Part shown: positions 19,152 to 60,998 of the stretch, piece after piece
Layout of the letters: every line of letters begins with the position of its first letter
How positions within the stretch are numbered: position 1 is the stretch's first letter
Sequence record: PV611058.1
Length of the DNA stretch: 64,000 nt
Direction: 5' to 3' (one strand)
Notes under the pieces: generated by a model
Told to the model about the DNA's origin: nothing
Database searches by the model: none
The model's input: the letters and a program-made list of their open reading frames with translations, nothing else
Position numbers and translations under genes: made by a program

Positions 19152-19685
19152 TTATTTCCTCATGTATTTTATTACATCTTCAAATAGTTTAGTTTTCAGT
19201 GCATCATCATTACCAGGTAGAAAAGTACTGAAGCTATTAAAATCTTCATTCTTGGCAAACTCACGCATCTGTGTGGAACTGTAGCGACTTATATTTCGGT
19301 CAATTCCAGCTTGAACTGCCTTGATTGAACAAAAATTATATAACTTCCCATTGTACGTGTCAAGTGTTTTTTGGAATGGTTCAAGTCTATCTGAACCACA
19401 TATGAAAAGAACATCTAAGTACTTTCCATCCAGTTCTCTCATTATATCAAACAGATTATCTTCTGTATAGATATTTTCTTGTACAGATGGGTAAAATCCT
19501 TCTGTATAGTACATTTTCAGTTCAGGAGGTAATGGGTTTTTGATGGCATCAGTACTGGTACTAAGGAATATTTTCAAATCAGCATTGTACTGTTCTTGTA
19601 GTGCTTGAGCTTTTTCAAACACTAAACCATGACCTCGATGTACAGGGTTAATTCTTCCGAATGTCACTACGCATGTTTCTTTCAT
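19152..19685 (-). CDS. HxGH nucleotidyltransferase (cytidylyl-/NMN-adenylyltransferase-like)
   Basis: TFGRINPVHRGH, KNPL, GSDR, SSTQMRE. Confidence 0.85.
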   Translation of the reverse strand: MKETCVVTFGRINPVHRGHGLVFEKAQALQEQYNADLKIFLSTSTDAIKNPLPPELKMYYTEGFYPSVQENIYTEDNLFDIMRELDGKYLDVLFICGSDRLEPFQKTLDTYNGKLYNFCSIKAVQAGIDRNISRYSSTQMREFAKNEDFNSFSTFLPGNDDALKTKLFEDVIKYMRK

Positions 19686-20206
19686 ATGTTCTTCATCACC
19701 TGACCAATAGATTTAAGATGGTTGATTTTAGCTGGAGTCAAATACTTATCCAGTACTATTAAACAACTAGGGAATGGAGCACTGTCAGTCTTTTTATCTG
19801 GTTCTTCAGGGATACCGAACTTTAAGCGACCTTTTATAAAACAAATACAATCACAAACTTTCGCAGCATAATCCTGAAAGGCTATAGTATCAGTTCTTGA
19901 TGGTACGAGAATCAGTACTGTAGCACCTTTGTTATATGCATCAACTGCCTTAGATAACCACGTTTTCAAATCACTGTACGGTGGGTTGAGCCACACGATA
20001 TTGTTTCCCCAGTCCTGTTCAAGTGAATTGTCTTCTGGTGTAAAGAAATTATCACACAATGCTGTTTCTTTAACACATGCTGCATCTAGTGTAAATCCCC
20101 AGAGTTCATCCAAATCTTCAAAGAAATCCTTTGGAGTAGTCCAGTTATCTTTCCCAGTACTGAAATGTACTGATTGTTTTTTCTTCGAAGCATCCTTCTT
20201 CGACAT
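19682..20206 (-). CDS. phage-type DNA N6-adenine methyltransferase
   Basis: WTTP, FTLDAAC, WLNPPYS, LVPSRTDT, FIKGRLKF. Confidence 0.9.
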   Translation of the reverse strand: MSKKDASKKKQSVHFSTGKDNWTTPKDFFEDLDELWGFTLDAACVKETALCDNFFTPEDNSLEQDWGNNIVWLNPPYSDLKTWLSKAVDAYNKGATVLILVPSRTDTIAFQDYAAKVCDCICFIKGRLKFGIPEEPDKKTDSAPFPSCLIVLDKYLTPAKINHLKSIGQVMKNI

Positions 20207-20222
20207 ACATAATTTCCTTTGA

Positions 20223-20819
20223 TTATAGACAGTTAAGTACTATGTCATCAAAAGTACTACTGTCAATGTTGTATTCATATAAAAATTTAAAATGTGATCC
20301 ATAACGCATCATCAGATTAAACTCTTCTTCAGTATTAAATTTGTAATCATGAAGAGTTTCAAGGGTACATGTTAAACCTAAAAACTCAATAATTTCTGAT
20401 GTTACATCATTTCCTGAATTGAAGTATTTAACCCAAACACATTTTCCTTGTGGGTTGAATTTTCTATATTCTCCTTCTAGTTCTCCATTGACGATATGTG
20501 CTTTCGCACTGATTAGATTATTACTATAACGCTCTTCGTAGTAGTTCCCATAACGAGCTTTAAGAATTGTAGGCTTCTTGGTTGGGAATAACTTAATGGA
20601 AGTTAATTCAAAACCGCACTGCAACTCTTTGATGTACGAAATACATCCCTTTTCTTTAATCACAACAAAACCAGTAAAATTCTCTTGGTCTTGGTTCTGA
20701 TTGTCTGAATCAACAAATTCTAGTGTTTTATAAGTGACGCTTTTAGATTTTTTAATAAATGACATCATTATTCCTATGGAAACATCAATGACTGTACATG
20801 GCGTTGACTTCATCAACAC
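20223..20819 (-). CDS. hypothetical protein with MORN-like repeat and degenerate family A motif
   Basis: GELEGEYRKFNPQGK; FNTEEEFNLMM. Confidence 0.75.
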   Translation of the reverse strand: MLMKSTPCTVIDVSIGIMMSFIKKSKSVTYKTLEFVDSDNQNQDQENFTGFVVIKEKGCISYIKELQCGFELTSIKLFPTKKPTILKARYGNYYEERYSNNLISAKAHIVNGELEGEYRKFNPQGKCVWVKYFNSGNDVTSEIIEFLGLTCTLETLHDYKFNTEEEFNLMMRYGSHFKFLYEYNIDSSTFDDIVLNCL

Positions 20820-20821
20820 CA

Positions 20822-20856
20822 GTCGAATTATACACGCTTCGCATGTCTAATTCGAC
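20822..20856. repeat. long inverted repeat/hairpin with GCGAAGC core (minus strand)
   Basis: GTCGAATTA-G-ACATGC-GAA-GCGTGT-A-TAATTCGAC. Confidence 0.85.
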
Positions 20857-20879
20857 GAAAGTACTATGATTTGTTTTAA

Positions 20880-21385
20880 TTAATATTGACGGGGTTTGCT
20901 TGAGCATATTTCATCCCCCCGCAGGGGAAAGAACAAAAAAGTTTGACGCTGGTGGCCTTCACATAGTTCATATCACGAATTCTCTTCCGAGGCGAAAGCG
21001 GGTTGCTCTGTTTCTCTCTATCGCGGTTCTTGTAGCAACGGTCGTCGGTCTTAAACATCCCGACACATAATACAAATACCATATGACCAGTACTTGTATT
21101 TGATTTCACGAATTTTGGACGCAACTATTTTGTATAAATTACGACCGCAAATTTCTCATGAAATCTCCCTTAGATAATTGGTAAGGTGCGATCCTTATAT
21201 GTCTATCGAGGAACTCTCTTTATCCTATTGGAGTTCTTTATACAGCCGCATTGCCGTGAGTGGTTCAAACTATGCCATCATCTAACGGGTTTCATTTGCT
21301 GTTCGTACTGAAAGGACTACTCATCTACCCTCTACTTTTCGAGTGGATTAGGCTTTAATCATTTCCATATGGAACCTTTCAGGAT
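20880..21385 (-). ncRNA. candidate structured non-coding RNA
   Basis: largest gene-free stretch in an otherwise packed genome, raised GC, several hairpins; not matched to a known family; strand inferred from the upstream promoter. Confidence 0.4.
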
Positions 21386-21386
21386 T

Positions 21387-21418
21387 AAAAAAAGGCGACA
21401 ACATATTCTGCTGTCACC
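21387..21418 (-). terminator. intrinsic terminator/attenuator
   Basis: GGTGACAGCA-GAATA-TGTTGTCGCC followed by T-run. Confidence 0.8.
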
Positions 21419-21422
21419 TTAC

Positions 21423-21450
21423 ATTATATCATAAACTTATGGTATGTCTC
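21423..21450 (-). promoter_or_regulatory. sigma70-like promoter
   Basis: GAGACA-16nt-TATAAT(GT) with TGn. Confidence 0.55.
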
Positions 21451-22297
21451 GGTTGTATTCTGTTTTTTCAGTGAAATTAGTTAAGATATCTGCACTTAAG
21501 CTTCTCATAACCTCAATCTTACTTGGCATGAACCTGTGCTTGTTTTTTACATACAACTCATCATCTTCAATGAAAGATGTGAACATGAATACCATATCTT
21601 CACGTGGGATTGAGAGAATATTACAGTTTTCATTTTCAGCAACAGGGGAATCATTGTAGTACTTAGAGAATGCAGTACTTTGACGACCGATTATGATAGA
21701 ATTTCGGATTAGAAAATTACTACAGTACTGAAAATCTTTGTAGTACTTGTCAAGGATATATGGCATTATCGCTTCTTTCACTTCTTCATATCCATTGGTA
21801 CTATCAATTTCAGTACAATAATCTTCTCGGTCTTTTTTCCCTCGATGATTATCAAACTCGTACTCAAAGAATAAATTTTCATTTAATGAATTATTTGAAC
21901 CAACTGATCCACTATAGTATGATTTTCTATCATTCATTCGATCATCCGGGCATGATGCATACATAGAAATGTCATGTGTTGACGTACCGATATAAATTTT
22001 CTTAGTAATGTGATTGTACGCGATGTAATCATAATCTTGTACTCCAGTTAGCATTAACTGGAACATCAATTCATCAGGAACATCAATTAACGGGTACTCA
22101 AACTTCGAATATCTACTACGACAGAAATTCTTTTCAAATGCTCGATATGCGATGAAATCTTTTAGGTTTGTAATAGATTCATGCTCATGTGTACTACTGG
22201 TGCGTACATTGACATTAGTAGACGAGCAATACCCTTCAGATTCTTCTGCGTAGTCATAATAACCCTTACTGTAGTCAACGATTAGATAAAGTTTCAT
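21437..22297 (-). CDS. family A outlier, 286 aa
   Basis: VPDELMFQLML. Confidence 0.8.
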   Translation of the reverse strand: MKLYLIVDYSKGYYDYAEESEGYCSSTNVNVRTSSTHEHESITNLKDFIAYRAFEKNFCRSRYSKFEYPLIDVPDELMFQLMLTGVQDYDYIAYNHITKKIYIGTSTHDISMYASCPDDRMNDRKSYYSGSVGSNNSLNENLFFEYEFDNHRGKKDREDYCTEIDSTNGYEEVKEAIMPYILDKYYKDFQYCSNFLIRNSIIIGRQSTAFSKYYNDSPVAENENCNILSIPREDMVFMFTSFIEDDELYVKNKHRFMPSKIEVMRSLSADILTNFTEKTEYNRDIP

Positions 22298-22309
22298 ATA
22301 TCTCCAGAC

Positions 22310-22338
22310 AAAAAAAAGACGAGATATTATATCCCGTC
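22310..22338 (-). terminator. intrinsic terminator
   Basis: GACGGGAT-ATAAT-ATCTCGTC followed by T-run. Confidence 0.8.
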
Positions 22339-22348
22339 CTTTGGTTTA

Positions 22349-22654
22349 TTAGTGGCTTGCCCAGCAGTAAACAGGACGTAGATTTTCCATTGGGTTTACT
22401 TCAGGCTTCAGTACTGTAACACGAACTTCATACGGAGTACCATCTGCATGATGGAACGTTTCGTAATGAATACTCTCAATGAAGGTTTCATATTCTTCTT
22501 GAGAACGTGAACGAACTGATGGGGAATATTTCTTTTTGGTATCTGATTTTAGTGTAACACTTACTAGTTCTGATTCTTCACCATTTTCAAGTTTATTGAA
22601 ATCGAACTCTGGTACACCTTCAAACATATCAAATTTCATTCCGTTGTCTTCCAT
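22349..22654 (-). CDS. hypothetical protein
   Basis: 101 aa, SD AAGGA. Confidence 0.8.
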   Translation of the reverse strand: MEDNGMKFDMFEGVPEFDFNKLENGEESELVSVTLKSDTKKKYSPSVRSRSQEEYETFIESIHYETFHHADGTPYEVRVTVLKPEVNPMENLRPVYCWASH

Positions 22655-22705
22655 TTTAAATTCCTTTTTATATAATGTTAGTTAGATAGTTTTTAATAAA
22701 TCAGA

Positions 22706-23092
22706 TTAGATTACGTCATACGGTAGAGTACCGTGACGGAATTTATCAAGTTGTGCAAGAACTTCTTTACGTTCGACAATCTCTGGCACATCTTCTTGCA
22801 GTTGGTCACATACTTCAACGATGAAATCCCAATCGCTCTCACAACTCACACGTACTGCTTCAATTGTTTTCCAATCAGCACTAATTTCACCTTCAGGATT
22901 TACATACGAAGGCCATACCTTTCCATAGTCTTGTACTGATTTGTCGTTAAGAACACGAATAGCATTGAAAATCTGTCCAGTACTGAAGTGTTTAGTATTC
23001 TTCATGTCTTCTAAGCAACATAGCTTAGGTTCACCCTGGACTTCAATCAGAAGTACACCACCAATAGCTTTTAGAACAGAACTTGTATTCAT
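22706..23092 (-). CDS. hypothetical protein
   Basis: 128 aa, SD GGAG. Confidence 0.8.
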   Translation of the reverse strand: MNTSSVLKAIGGVLLIEVQGEPKLCCLEDMKNTKHFSTGQIFNAIRVLNDKSVQDYGKVWPSYVNPEGEISADWKTIEAVRVSCESDWDFIVEVCDQLQEDVPEIVERKEVLAQLDKFRHGTLPYDVI

Positions 23093-44144: not shown

Positions 44145-44221
44145 NNNNNNNNNNNNNNNNNNNNNNNNNNNNNNNNNNNNNNNNNNNNNNNNNNNNNNNN
44201 NNNNNNNNNNNNNNNNNNNNN
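44145..44221. other. assembly gap (77 N)
   Basis: run of N flanked by GC-rich GCGGCGGGG and C9 tracts. Confidence 0.99.
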
Positions 44222-59050: not shown

Positions 59051-59247
59051 TTTAAGGCCGTGATGTGGTTGTCTACCATAACCTCCTGATAGTTTGTTCC
59101 TACAAATGGTATTAATGTTGAGTCTGTTAGTATAACATACTTTTCATTGGATGTTAGTGATTCATCATCGTAAACTTGAAGTCTAAAGTTCTTCCCTTGT
59201 TCTAATCGTTTAAGATATTCTTGAGTGTTTATGTCTTTCATTTGCAT
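59023..59247 (-). CDS. family B paralog
   Basis: VGTNYQEVMV. Confidence 0.85.
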   Translation of the reverse strand: MQMKDINTQEYLKRLEQGKNFRLQVYDDESLTSNEKYVILTDSTLIPFVGTNYQEVMVDNHITALKCHVRDLGK

Positions 59248-59456
59248 TTGTCCCTTATTAAATCAGTGAGGGCAACTATGTGTGCAACAACATACTCTTC
59301 CTGAAAGTTCGTCCCCAGTACAGCCATCATGCGTATATCGGTGGTGTTTATCCTGTGTTCCCTTACACATAAACCTTCTGTGTGAGGAAGTGTAAAATAT
59401 TTGTTTATTGCAGCAACGATAATTTTATTCTTCTCGGAATTACTTAAATGTTTCAT
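59238..59456 (-). CDS. family B paralog
   Basis: LGTNFQEEYV. Confidence 0.85.
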   Translation of the reverse strand: MKHLSNSEKNKIIVAAINKYFTLPHTEGLCVREHRINTTDIRMMAVLGTNFQEEYVVAHIVALTDLIRDKCK

Positions 59457-59665
59457 AGTTTACTCTTAATGTATTTCTGGAGTGCAATTATATACTCATT
59501 CAAGAAATGCTCCTGATAGTCTGTGCCGAGGAATGCACCCAATAGTATATCATTTTCCAATACTAATGCTAAGTTCAAATCATCAGTCTCTTCATATACT
59601 ATGAGAATTTCAAGTTGTCTTGCAGCGACGCGTTCGGTATATAGATTTGAGTTAATGCTATTCAT
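59453..59665 (-). CDS. family B paralog
   Basis: LGTDYQEHFL. Confidence 0.85.
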   Translation of the reverse strand: MNSINSNLYTERVAARQLEILIVYEETDDLNLALVLENDILLGAFLGTDYQEHFLNEYIIALQKYIKSKL

Positions 59666-59874
59666 AGTTTACTCTTAATGTAATTCTGGAGTGCAATTAA
59701 GTATTCCCCTACATAATACACCTGAAAGTCTGTATCCAAAAATGCACCCATAAGTAAATCTTTTTCTAATACCCTTGATAAGTTAAGGTCTGCATTTGAA
59801 TTGTATATAATTAAGATTTTATTCTGGACAGAAACAAAACGTATCTTATATTCTTCTGGTGTTAAAAAAATCAT
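59662..59874 (-). CDS. family B paralog
   Basis: LDTDFQVYYV. Confidence 0.85.
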   Translation of the reverse strand: MIFLTPEEYKIRFVSVQNKILIIYNSNADLNLSRVLEKDLLMGAFLDTDFQVYYVGEYLIALQNYIKSKL

Positions 59875-60080
59875 AGTTTACTCTTAATATCTTCTATTAA
59901 AAAATGAATCCAATCGTCAACATACTCTTCCTGATGGTTTGTGTTCAGTACAGCCAACATGCGGATCTCTGCTCTTGCAACTTGGATTTCAGTTTTAGAA
60001 AGGTCTTTGCTGATATCAAACATTAAGTCCATGTATTTCAAGATAAGACCGAATGATTGGGTTCGTGTTATAGTTTTCAT
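59871..60080 (-). CDS. family B paralog
   Basis: LNTNHQEEYV. Confidence 0.85.
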   Translation of the reverse strand: MKTITRTQSFGLILKYMDLMFDISKDLSKTEIQVARAEIRMLAVLNTNHQEEYVDDWIHFLIEDIKSKL

Positions 60081-60277
60081 TGTTTCCTCGTGGACAATAT
60101 TTTATTTTTCAATGTATCCATATATTGAATCACCCATCTTTCCTGATAGTTAGTTCCCAAAGTAATCAAAAGGTATAACTCCATTCGTTCTACGTGTGTG
60201 TCTGTATTATAAATCTTTGTGAAGTTTTTACGTAACAGTTCTTGATAATCTTCTTTATTTAAAATACGCATTTTCAT
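60077..60277 (-). CDS. family B paralog
   Basis: LGTNYQERWV. Confidence 0.85.
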   Translation of the reverse strand: MKMRILNKEDYQELLRKNFTKIYNTDTHVERMELYLLITLGTNYQERWVIQYMDTLKNKILSTRKQ

Positions 60278-60471
60278 AGTCTACCTTTTATGTCCCTTCG
60301 TAATTCTTGTAAGTATAGTTCGATATACTTTTCTTGATAGTTAGTTCCTATGAAAAGTTTCATAACCAATTCACGCTTATATGCAATACCACGGATATGT
60401 GACATATGTAAGATATATGCCATGTTGGATATGAGTGTGTGGTTGTGCTCTTCTTGAGTTAAAATACGCAT
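60274..60471 (-). CDS. family B paralog (first gene of array)
   Basis: IGTNYQEKYI. Confidence 0.85.
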   Translation of the reverse strand: MRILTQEEHNHTLISNMAYILHMSHIRGIAYKRELVMKLFIGTNYQEKYIELYLQELRRDIKGRL

Positions 60472-60501
60472 AGGGACTCCATTAAAAATAATATCAATCC
60501 A

Positions 60502-60529
60502 ATAATATACGATTCATATAAAAAGTCAA
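60502..60529 (-). promoter_or_regulatory. sigma70-like promoter driving family B array
   Basis: TTGACT-16nt-TATTAT, SD GGAG before first ATG. Confidence 0.65.
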
Positions 60530-60622
60530 TAACATTTTATTAGTAATACCCCTTTATCGAAGTCGCTAAGGTTACCCGCCCTTTAGCCCCCTACGCATTT
60601 TGCCATAGTCCAATCCCTTTTT

Positions 60623-60698
60623 ATTCATAAAAGTCAAGGGATTACCTATGCATTTTTTTAACGCTGAAGTTTAAAAATGTCTTGACTTTTTTATGATT
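60623..60698. repeat. imperfect inverted repeat
   Basis: ATTCATAAAAGTCAAG ... CTTGACTTTTTTATGATT. Confidence 0.6.
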
Positions 60699-60720
60699 CA
60701 GTACTAAATCCTTTTACGCA

Positions 60721-60930
60721 TTAATCCTTCGTTACGCTTACGATTATCTGTGTATCCCCATAGTCCTGCCATACTTCCACGCCAGCCGTCGCCCTGGTTA
60801 GTCGTGCTGTCATCTGCTTAATGGTCTTAGGCTTTAGTGGAACCTGTTGCAGTACTGTACGCATAGCACCATCGACGTTATCATGTACGCCTGCAATAGT
60901 GCCTAGAACGTTGTATACTGTATAGATCAT
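60721..60930 (-). CDS. early-region hypothetical protein
   Basis: 69 aa with SD GGAG. Confidence 0.75.
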   Translation of the reverse strand: MIYTVYNVLGTIAGVHDNVDGAMRTVLQQVPLKPKTIKQMTARLTRATAGVEVWQDYGDTQIIVSVTKD

Positions 60931-60954
60931 GTGTATGTACTCCTGATATAGTTA

Positions 60955-60974
60955 AGGCCGCTAGAGAGCGGCCT
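60955..60974. repeat. intergenic GC-rich hairpin
   Basis: AGGCCGCT-AGAG-AGCGGCCT, no T-tract. Confidence 0.75.
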
Positions 60975-60998
60975 ATGATGTTTGATGATGTGTAACGC

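Follow-up and report, generated by a model that had tools for sequence, protein, structure and literature searches.

A gene-free interval, enriched in GC and dense in potential hairpins, lies at 20880-21418 of a 64,000-nucleotide stretch (hereafter, the window) of the genome of Escherichia phage WPEC3 (PV611058.1, 384 kb; window position equals record position minus 301060), a member of the Asteriusvirus 121Q/PBECO4/G17 group. The initial annotation proposed that it encodes an unannotated structured phage RNA or, alternatively, is a replication origin. Comparative analysis of this locus strongly supports the first of these proposals and does not exclude the second. The interval belongs to a gene for an intricately folded non-coding RNA of roughly 0.5-0.65 kb that Rak2-like jumbo phages keep in four or five regularly spaced copies, and that appears to be a new class of large phage RNA of still unknown function.

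The gene-free interval and its promoter

The upstream minus-strand ORF, of 286 aa, ends at 21437, and the downstream minus-strand gene, as annotated in WPEC3 and G17, starts at 20765, which leaves a gap of 671 nt (20766-21436). This is the largest stretch of the window without a plausible gene; the only longer stretch free of ORFs of 75 aa or more (59051-60998) is tiled by overlapping ORFs of 65-74 aa, and a masked run of N at 44145-44221 plays no part here. The GC content of the gap is 0.399 compared to 0.336 for the window, which corresponds to the 96.6th percentile of equal-sized windows. The minimum free energy of the 627-nt minus-strand RNA is -170.4 kcal/mol, with z = -4.35 against 20 dinucleotide shuffles. 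The sigma70-like promoter that the initial annotation placed at 21423-21450 was confirmed by a consensus scan (GAGACA-16-TATAAT with TG, 10 of 12 matches), which also showed one weak plus-strand promoter-like site at 20804-20831.

ARAGORN found no tRNA or tmRNA gene in the whole window. A search of window positions 19500-23000 against the covariance models of Rfam 15, which include RNase P A/B, group I and II introns, tmRNA, 6S, GOLLD, ROOL, OLE and HEARO, gave a single unrelated, sub-threshold hit outside the element at E <= 1, and a search with four paralogous loci of phage G17 gave no hit on any element even at E <= 10. The element does not interrupt a host gene in the manner of a group I intron, given that the upstream gene ends with its own stop codon and terminator, the downstream gene has its own RBS and ATG, the flanks differ completely among paralogues, and one copy lies between genes of the opposite strand.

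A multi-copy family in Rak2-like jumbo phages

Window positions 20200-22300 are 87-99.6% identical to the Asteriusvirus jumbo phages (121Q, PBECO4, G17, phAPEC6 and others), and the gap is more conserved than its flanking genes (95% compared to about 87% identity to 121Q-type phages). A blastn search reported 4-5 places per record in 62 phage records. Whole-record searches revealed four copies in G17 and WPEC3, and five in Erwinia phage Kaldavass, Xanthomonas phages XbC2 and XaC1, Salmonella phage 7t3, Serratia phage BF, Cronobacter phage GAP32, Yersinia phage fHe-Yen9-04, Pectobacterium phage CBB and Klebsiella phage fENko-Kae01; in addition to Asteriusvirus, the related genera (Mimasvirus, Eneladusvirus, RaK2 and unclassified relatives) carry the element, with five copies. 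All 53 full-length copies from these 11 genomes contain both a 5' and a 3' anchor profile, are 400-535 nt long from anchor to anchor and, within a genome, lie on the same strand. A search for further copies inside the window found none, the other WPEC3 copies being located at about 72.5, 187.1 and 270.6 kb of the record. A pattern scan of IMG/VR, filtered with a profile, found real copies only in jumbo-phage contigs of about 345-371 kb or their fragments, among them Klebsiella phage RaK2, with three covariance-model hits. A partial scan of prokaryotic genomes gave one real hit, on a 68.8-kb contig binned into a Buttiauxella MAG, which is most likely a phage fragment. As far as we searched, the family is restricted to Rak2-like jumbo phages of Enterobacterales and Xanthomonas.

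A covarying, pseudoknotted fold on the minus strand

Comparison of the copies showed that the conserved unit is longer than the interval outlined in the initial annotation and runs from the promoter (21450) to about 20800. The following features, all on the minus strand, were delineated.

21423..21450 (-), promoter of the RNA gene: -35-like GAGACA (21450-21445), 16-nt spacer and extended -10 TGATATAAT (21431-21423), overlapping the 3' end and stop codon of the upstream 286-aa gene
21385..21420 (-), 12-bp hairpin (21420-21392) plus U-run, a terminator for the upstream gene, starting 3 nt after the -10
21363..21386 (-), conserved leader: motif AAYYCUGNNUGR (here AAUCCUGAAAGG, 21386-21375) followed by a short hairpin (UUCCAUAUGGAA, 21374-21363)
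21165..21353 (-), 5' domain: helices H1 21346-21341/21332-21328 (GAAAAnGUA loop), H3 21320-21316/21309-21305, H4a 21302-21298/21246-21242, H4b 21288-21285/21257-21254, H5 21236-21231/21216-21211 and an AAGG/CCUU hairpin 21197-21194/21185-21182; invariant single-stranded blocks GAUAGACAUAUAAGG (21207-21193) and UAAGGGAG (21172-21165)
21104..21164 (-), central variable region with a portable sub-module (consensus ACAAUAUAGAUCCGUCCAAAAUU)
20964..21103 (-), 3' domain with two pseudoknots: hairpin S1 21100-21088/21081-21069, the loop of which (21087-21081) pairs with 20973-20967 (pseudoknot 1); H7 about 21065-21062/21047-21043; stem A 21039-21035/21006-21002, which crosses H9 and H10 (pseudoknot 2); H9 21025-21021/20978-20974; H10 21018-21014/20998-20994; H11 20991-20988/20985-20982
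20929..20963 (-), linker ending in the first CGUCA motif (CAGCGUCAAAC, 20951-20941) and a U6 run (20940-20935)
20886..20928 (-), invariant 3' block: C4-loop-G4 hairpin (20928-20924/20919-20915), GGGGGGAUGAAA (20920-20909) and a second CGUCA motif (CCCCGUCAA, 20894-20886)
20800..20856 (-), tail hairpins: 20856-20822 (9-bp outer stem, inner stem, GAA triloop) and 20820-20800 (8 bp, UGAAG loop), both formed in the minimum free energy fold
20876..21124 (-), 82-codon ORF, not a gene

The pattern of substitutions provides very strong evidence of a conserved RNA fold. A crude all-against-all covariation scan was too noisy because of shared ancestry and was replaced with stacked-helix filtering. RNAalifold applied to the alignment of the 53 copies predicted 60 pairs, of which 41 show compensatory double changes. 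In the 5' domain, compensatory changes were seen in 5 of 6 pairs of H1, 4 of 5 of H3, 3 of 5 of H4a and 6 of 6 of H5. A covariance model of the 3' domain, which matches window positions 20964-21103 on the minus strand at 103.8 bits, recovered 89 copies at 92-131 bits. Among the 78 distinct sequences in this set, 98.2% of the cells are paired and 23 of 28 pairs show double changes, with a covariation score of 0.731 compared to 0.241 +/- 0.009 in shuffled alignments (0 of 500 shuffles reached the observed value) and at most 0.149 when the partners were slid by 1-3 columns. For the curated structure of the whole element, which consists of 73 pairs, 93.1% of the cells are paired, compared to 38-46% with slid partners, 54 pairs are compensated, and the score is 0.581 against at most 0.156. 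Since orthologues and paralogues are related sequences, the shuffle statistics overstate independence and are not probabilities, a problem that the slid-partner controls address; furthermore, the alignments of the variable regions are rough, and the helices in the leader, linker, 3' block and tail are delineated without statistical testing. G.U and U.G cells outnumber A.C and C.A cells 203 to 22, which puts the fold on the minus strand of the window, the strand of the promoter. In all, the fold comprises two domains with at least 14 covariation-supported helices, connected by invariant, purine-rich single-stranded blocks.

Both pseudoknots of the 3' domain are supported by covariation. The 8-nt loop of hairpin S1 (12 bp, 92% paired compared to 31-43% in slid controls, covariation 0.87) pairs over 7 bp with a strand about 110 nt downstream, and all 7 pairs are compensated. 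Stem A (GUUGC/GCAAC) is 100% paired in the 78 distinct sequences, with CG/UA exchange at its closing pair. In H10, a CUUUC strand covaries with a local GAGAG strand.

Of the five helices proposed in the initial annotation, four are confirmed: GAACTC/GAGTTC, which is H5; TACAAGTAC/GTATTTGTA, which is S1; GTCGG/CCGAC (about 21065-21043); and GTTGC/GCAAC, which is, however, a pseudoknot strand (stem A) and not a simple hairpin. The fifth, a GGGG...CCCC pairing with TGCT/AGCA at 20891-20918, is not supported, as the downstream C-run and the TGCT/AGCA arms are not conserved. The conserved pairing is instead the upstream C4-loop-G4 hairpin, which varies only by C-to-U changes giving U.G.

Anatomy of the gene

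Each of the 53 copies is preceded by TGnTATAAT with a TGRRAC-like hexamer about 16 nt upstream. This promoter class is common in the window, with 20 TGnTATAAT sites, 17 of them on the minus strand. In the window copy and its orthologues, the -10 element sits 3-4 nt before the terminator hairpin of the upstream gene, the homologue of which is annotated in G17 as an ARNold terminator, and the order of promoter and hairpin recurs, with different hairpin sequences, in the orthologues of other genera (clade A). We infer that transcripts of the upstream gene stop at the 12-bp terminator, whereas those initiated at the nested promoter would carry only a truncated hairpin of about 7 bp and read on into the RNA. 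The variable 5' hairpin is followed by the conserved leader motif with its own hairpin and then by the two domains. The portable sub-module of the central region sits, in other paralogues, inside the H11 loop, in both places or in neither, which is similar to the relocation of peripheral elements in large ribozymes.

Downstream of the 3' domain, at the linker (alignment columns about 560-625), about half of the paralogues have a terminator-like hairpin plus U-run that precedes the invariant 3' block, so that the 3' end of the RNA is ambiguous. The conserved 3' motif is CGUCAG in most copies but CGUCAA in those of Asteriusvirus, 7t3 and XaC1, and this G/A variation is not compensated in the CUG motif of the leader. 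GGGGGGAT occurs in the 360-kb genome of fENko-Kae01 only at its five elements, and GGGGGGAU occurs nowhere else in a 360-kb genome. Hairpins equivalent to those of the tail, and an AAUUCUU(A)GAC-hairpin-GGCWAAU motif, follow other copies, and in fENko-Kae01 this motif is found only next to elements, although these hairpins may or may not belong to the mature RNA.

The element is not protein-coding. The 82-codon ORF is open only in WPEC3 and G17, whereas the longest ORFs in the 53 copies range from 31 to 97 aa in varying frames and strands, and those of the clade-A orthologues of other genera are 31-61 aa long in other frames or on the other strand; the tblastn matches are short, frame-broken pieces. 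A Pfam search with the flanking ORFs and the 82-aa ORF produced only a Dam methyltransferase and a weak cytidylyltransferase-like hit, both in neighbouring genes.

Evidence of transcription is only weak. In two RNA-seq runs of one study, contigs over this copy have a depth of 10-11.5 and contigs of paralogues 15-18, compared to 2.5-5.8 for flanking genes, that is, 2-4 times the flank depth. A third RNA library, a wastewater metatranscriptome, showed no clear excess over one flank, and a run analyzed at the level of raw reads contained no phage reads. The contigs give neither ends nor strand and cannot exclude DNA carry-over.

Possible functions

That this is a family of structured non-coding RNA genes can be considered established with high confidence, but the function is not. 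As the best available explanation, which we regard as at most about as likely as not, we infer that the RNA acts through its three-dimensional fold rather than through coding or simple antisense pairing, as an abundant trans-acting RNA made during infection, either the core of an RNA-protein or RNA-only assembly, or a ribozyme. Under this reading, the several promoter-driven copies supply dosage, the conserved core carries the activity, and the variable peripheral hairpins and the portable sub-module are tertiary or partner-contact elements. The elaborate fold, the invariant loop nucleotides and the relocated module are the grounds for this view, and large RNAs with this much conserved tertiary-type structure, which are rare, have in the past turned out to be ribozymes, guide RNAs or unusual RNA assemblies. 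However, no partner protein, target or catalytic signature was identified, and a trans-acting mode explains neither the regular spacing and co-orientation of the copies nor the long retention of diverged paralogues at syntenic sites. The five copies are 45-95 kb apart, except for one 34-kb gap in XaC1, and the probability that five random points on a circle have a minimum gap at least as large as observed is 0.001-0.02 in eight of the nine five-copy genomes and 0.07 in XaC1, compared to 0.06-0.10 for the four less evenly spaced copies of the Asteriusvirus genomes. Because these genomes are syntenic, this amounts to one observation, made post hoc.

The spacing, the co-orientation and the unique G6 block are explained only by the alternative that each copy is the RNA part of a replication origin, where the promoter-driven, structured transcript forms a persistent R-loop near the invariant C4/G6 block and the AT-rich tail and primes leading-strand synthesis, four or five such origins replicating a 350-kb genome. 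The location of the copies at syntenic sites next to unrelated genes is as expected of cis-acting sites, and conservation exceeding that of coding DNA fits joint DNA and RNA constraints. The analogy would be to the ColE1 RNA II pre-primer, probably a structured RNA of about 550 nt in which a G-run and C-run interaction sets hybrid formation, and to the promoter-driven R-loop origins oriF and oriG from which T4-type replisomes appear to start. Nevertheless, fourteen covarying helices, two pseudoknots and invariant loop nucleotides are far more structure than known primer RNAs need, and GC skew in fENko-Kae01 follows gene strand and shows no inflection at any copy, although this test is weak because skew is dominated by transcription; we consider an origin role possible but unlikely. 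A giant cis-acting leader, riboswitch-like or a put/EAR-like processive antitermination element, appears still less likely. The order of promoter, structured RNA, terminator-like hairpin in about half of the copies and same-strand genes, the lack of a clear terminator before the downstream gene in the window, and conserved hairpins that reach to just upstream of the next ribosome-binding site are compatible with it, but the downstream genes are unrelated among paralogues, and one syntenic paralogue group near endonuclease VII (G17 176 kb, CBB 174 kb and others) has no co-directional downstream gene and lies antisense between plus-strand genes; the element also seems to be 5-10 times larger than known put or EAR elements. 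A coding role, for the 82-codon ORF or for the four small hypothetical proteins annotated in the gap in the WPEC3 record, is very improbable given that most annotators call no gene here and that the substitutions are pairwise-compensatory, not codon-like. Similarly improbable is a DNA-level repeat without RNA function, such as the remnant of a mobile element or a protein-binding site array: the element is multi-copy and dispersed, with signs of gene conversion, but compensatory changes preserve pairing on one strand only, the syntenic positions across genera show that the copies are not recently mobile, every copy keeps a promoter, and no terminal repeats or transposase were seen. A function not considered here also remains possible. 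It is tentatively conceivable, although doubtful, that the four or five diverged paralogues work together, either as a hetero-oligomeric RNA machine or ribozyme made in bulk during infection, or as the RNA components of a set of regularly spaced, RNA-primed origins, a ColE1-like mechanism multiplied along a 350-kb viral chromosome. The element bears on the open question of what organises replication or expression of a 350-kb genome that has no nucleus-like shell.

Relationship to known RNAs

No description of the element was found in the literature that we could search, including work on phages 121Q, PBECO4, RaK2, GAP32, CBB, fEgEco12, Sharanji and phAPEC6, and sequence records either leave the region blank or annotate spurious small CDS; about 60 GenBank records need an ncRNA feature at 4-5 sites each. 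The phages concerned include cultivable phages of E. coli, Klebsiella, Salmonella, Erwinia, Serratia, Yersinia, Cronobacter, Pectobacterium and Xanthomonas, several of which are candidates for therapy or biocontrol. In kind, the RNA resembles the large 'ornate' bacterial and prophage RNAs GOLLD, ROOL and OLE (bioRxiv 10.1101/2024.12.08.627333) in its size class (0.45-0.8 kb), its many covarying helices with pseudoknots, phage association (GOLLD and ROOL), the absence of an associated ORF and a function that cannot be deduced from sequence, but it is not homologous to GOLLD and ROOL, matches no Rfam model, and is present as four or five diverged paralogues per genome at regular spacing, each with its own promoter. 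With ColE1 RNA II and the T4 oriF/oriG origins it shares a promoter-driven, structured transcript of about 0.5 kb and a G-run and C-run near the 3' part, and might share a cis-acting logic that would explain the spacing and co-orientation, but its fold is far more elaborate and deeply conserved, and there are several homologous copies in one replicon. The packaging RNA (pRNA) of the phi29 family is likewise a phage-encoded structural RNA, one that works as an oligomer, and five paralogues invite the idea of a ring or hetero-oligomer; however, pRNA is about 120-174 nt long, single-copy and homo-oligomeric, and no similarity was found. The distantly related Pseudomonas jumbo phage PA5oct produces four RNA-seq-defined, ORF-free transcripts of 236-619 nt (ncRNA001-004), two of them highly expressed (PMC7318152). 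These are not homologous to the element: the covariance model of the 3' domain finds nothing in the whole PA5oct record at E <= 1, a full-length profile search with nhmmer finds nothing in the region holding ncRNA001 and ncRNA002, and the signature motifs are absent.

Evolution of the copies

The flanking proteins are conserved among orthologous positions but unrelated among paralogues. A tree of the copies shows position-specific clades that are shared by several genera. All five XaC1 copies cluster together, which points to concerted evolution, and there is apparent gene conversion in CBB and WPEC3.

Nested promoter, annotation and neighboring genes

Further features of the window are the following.

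21385-21450, nested promoter of the RNA and terminator of the upstream gene
20785-21358, four small CDS (CDS567-570) in the deposited WPEC3 record
19152-20206, neighboring genes
59051-60998, cluster of small overlapping ORFs, minus strand
44145-44221, run of 77 N (masked or a gap)

The -10 of the RNA's promoter lies 3 nt before the 12-bp terminator hairpin of the upstream gene, and this arrangement is conserved in orthologues of other genera with different hairpin sequences. The four CDS that the WPEC3 annotation places inside the RNA gene are labeled as hypothetical proteins; none is conserved in homologues, and several other deposited records call no gene there. The neighboring genes encode a Dam-family N6-adenine methyltransferase (Pfam PF05869, E = 6e-33) and, beside it, a protein with a weak match to the FAD-synthetase (cytidylyltransferase-like) family. 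Elsewhere in the window, the stretch of about 2 kb at 59051-60998 is tiled by eight overlapping ORFs of 65-74 aa and looks like a cluster of very small genes rather than non-coding DNA.

Sequence signatures and evolution of the paralogues

In fENko-Kae01 (OR228459.1), where the elements are located at 39.0, 99.1, 181.0, 264.8 and 312.0 kb, GGGGGGAT occurs only at the five elements in 360 kb, and the motif AATTCTTAGAC-hairpin-GGCTAAT occurs only 57-84 nt downstream of three of them. There are, in addition, signs of concerted evolution or gene conversion among paralogues: all five XaC1 copies cluster together, the clade-A-position copy of CBB groups with clade D, and the 5' end of the WPEC3 copy at 72.5 kb differs from its G17 orthologue and resembles other paralogues.

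A full-length element (nhmmer 300 bits) was also detected in a 68.8-kb contig (DAMALH010000023.1) binned as a bacterial MAG (Buttiauxella sp.), which is probably a mis-binned jumbo-phage fragment. One Asteriusvirus paralogue (within the G17 region 62.6-68.1 kb) lies immediately downstream of the phage's RpoD-like sigma factor gene, with an HNH-endonuclease-like gene about 0.5 kb further on.
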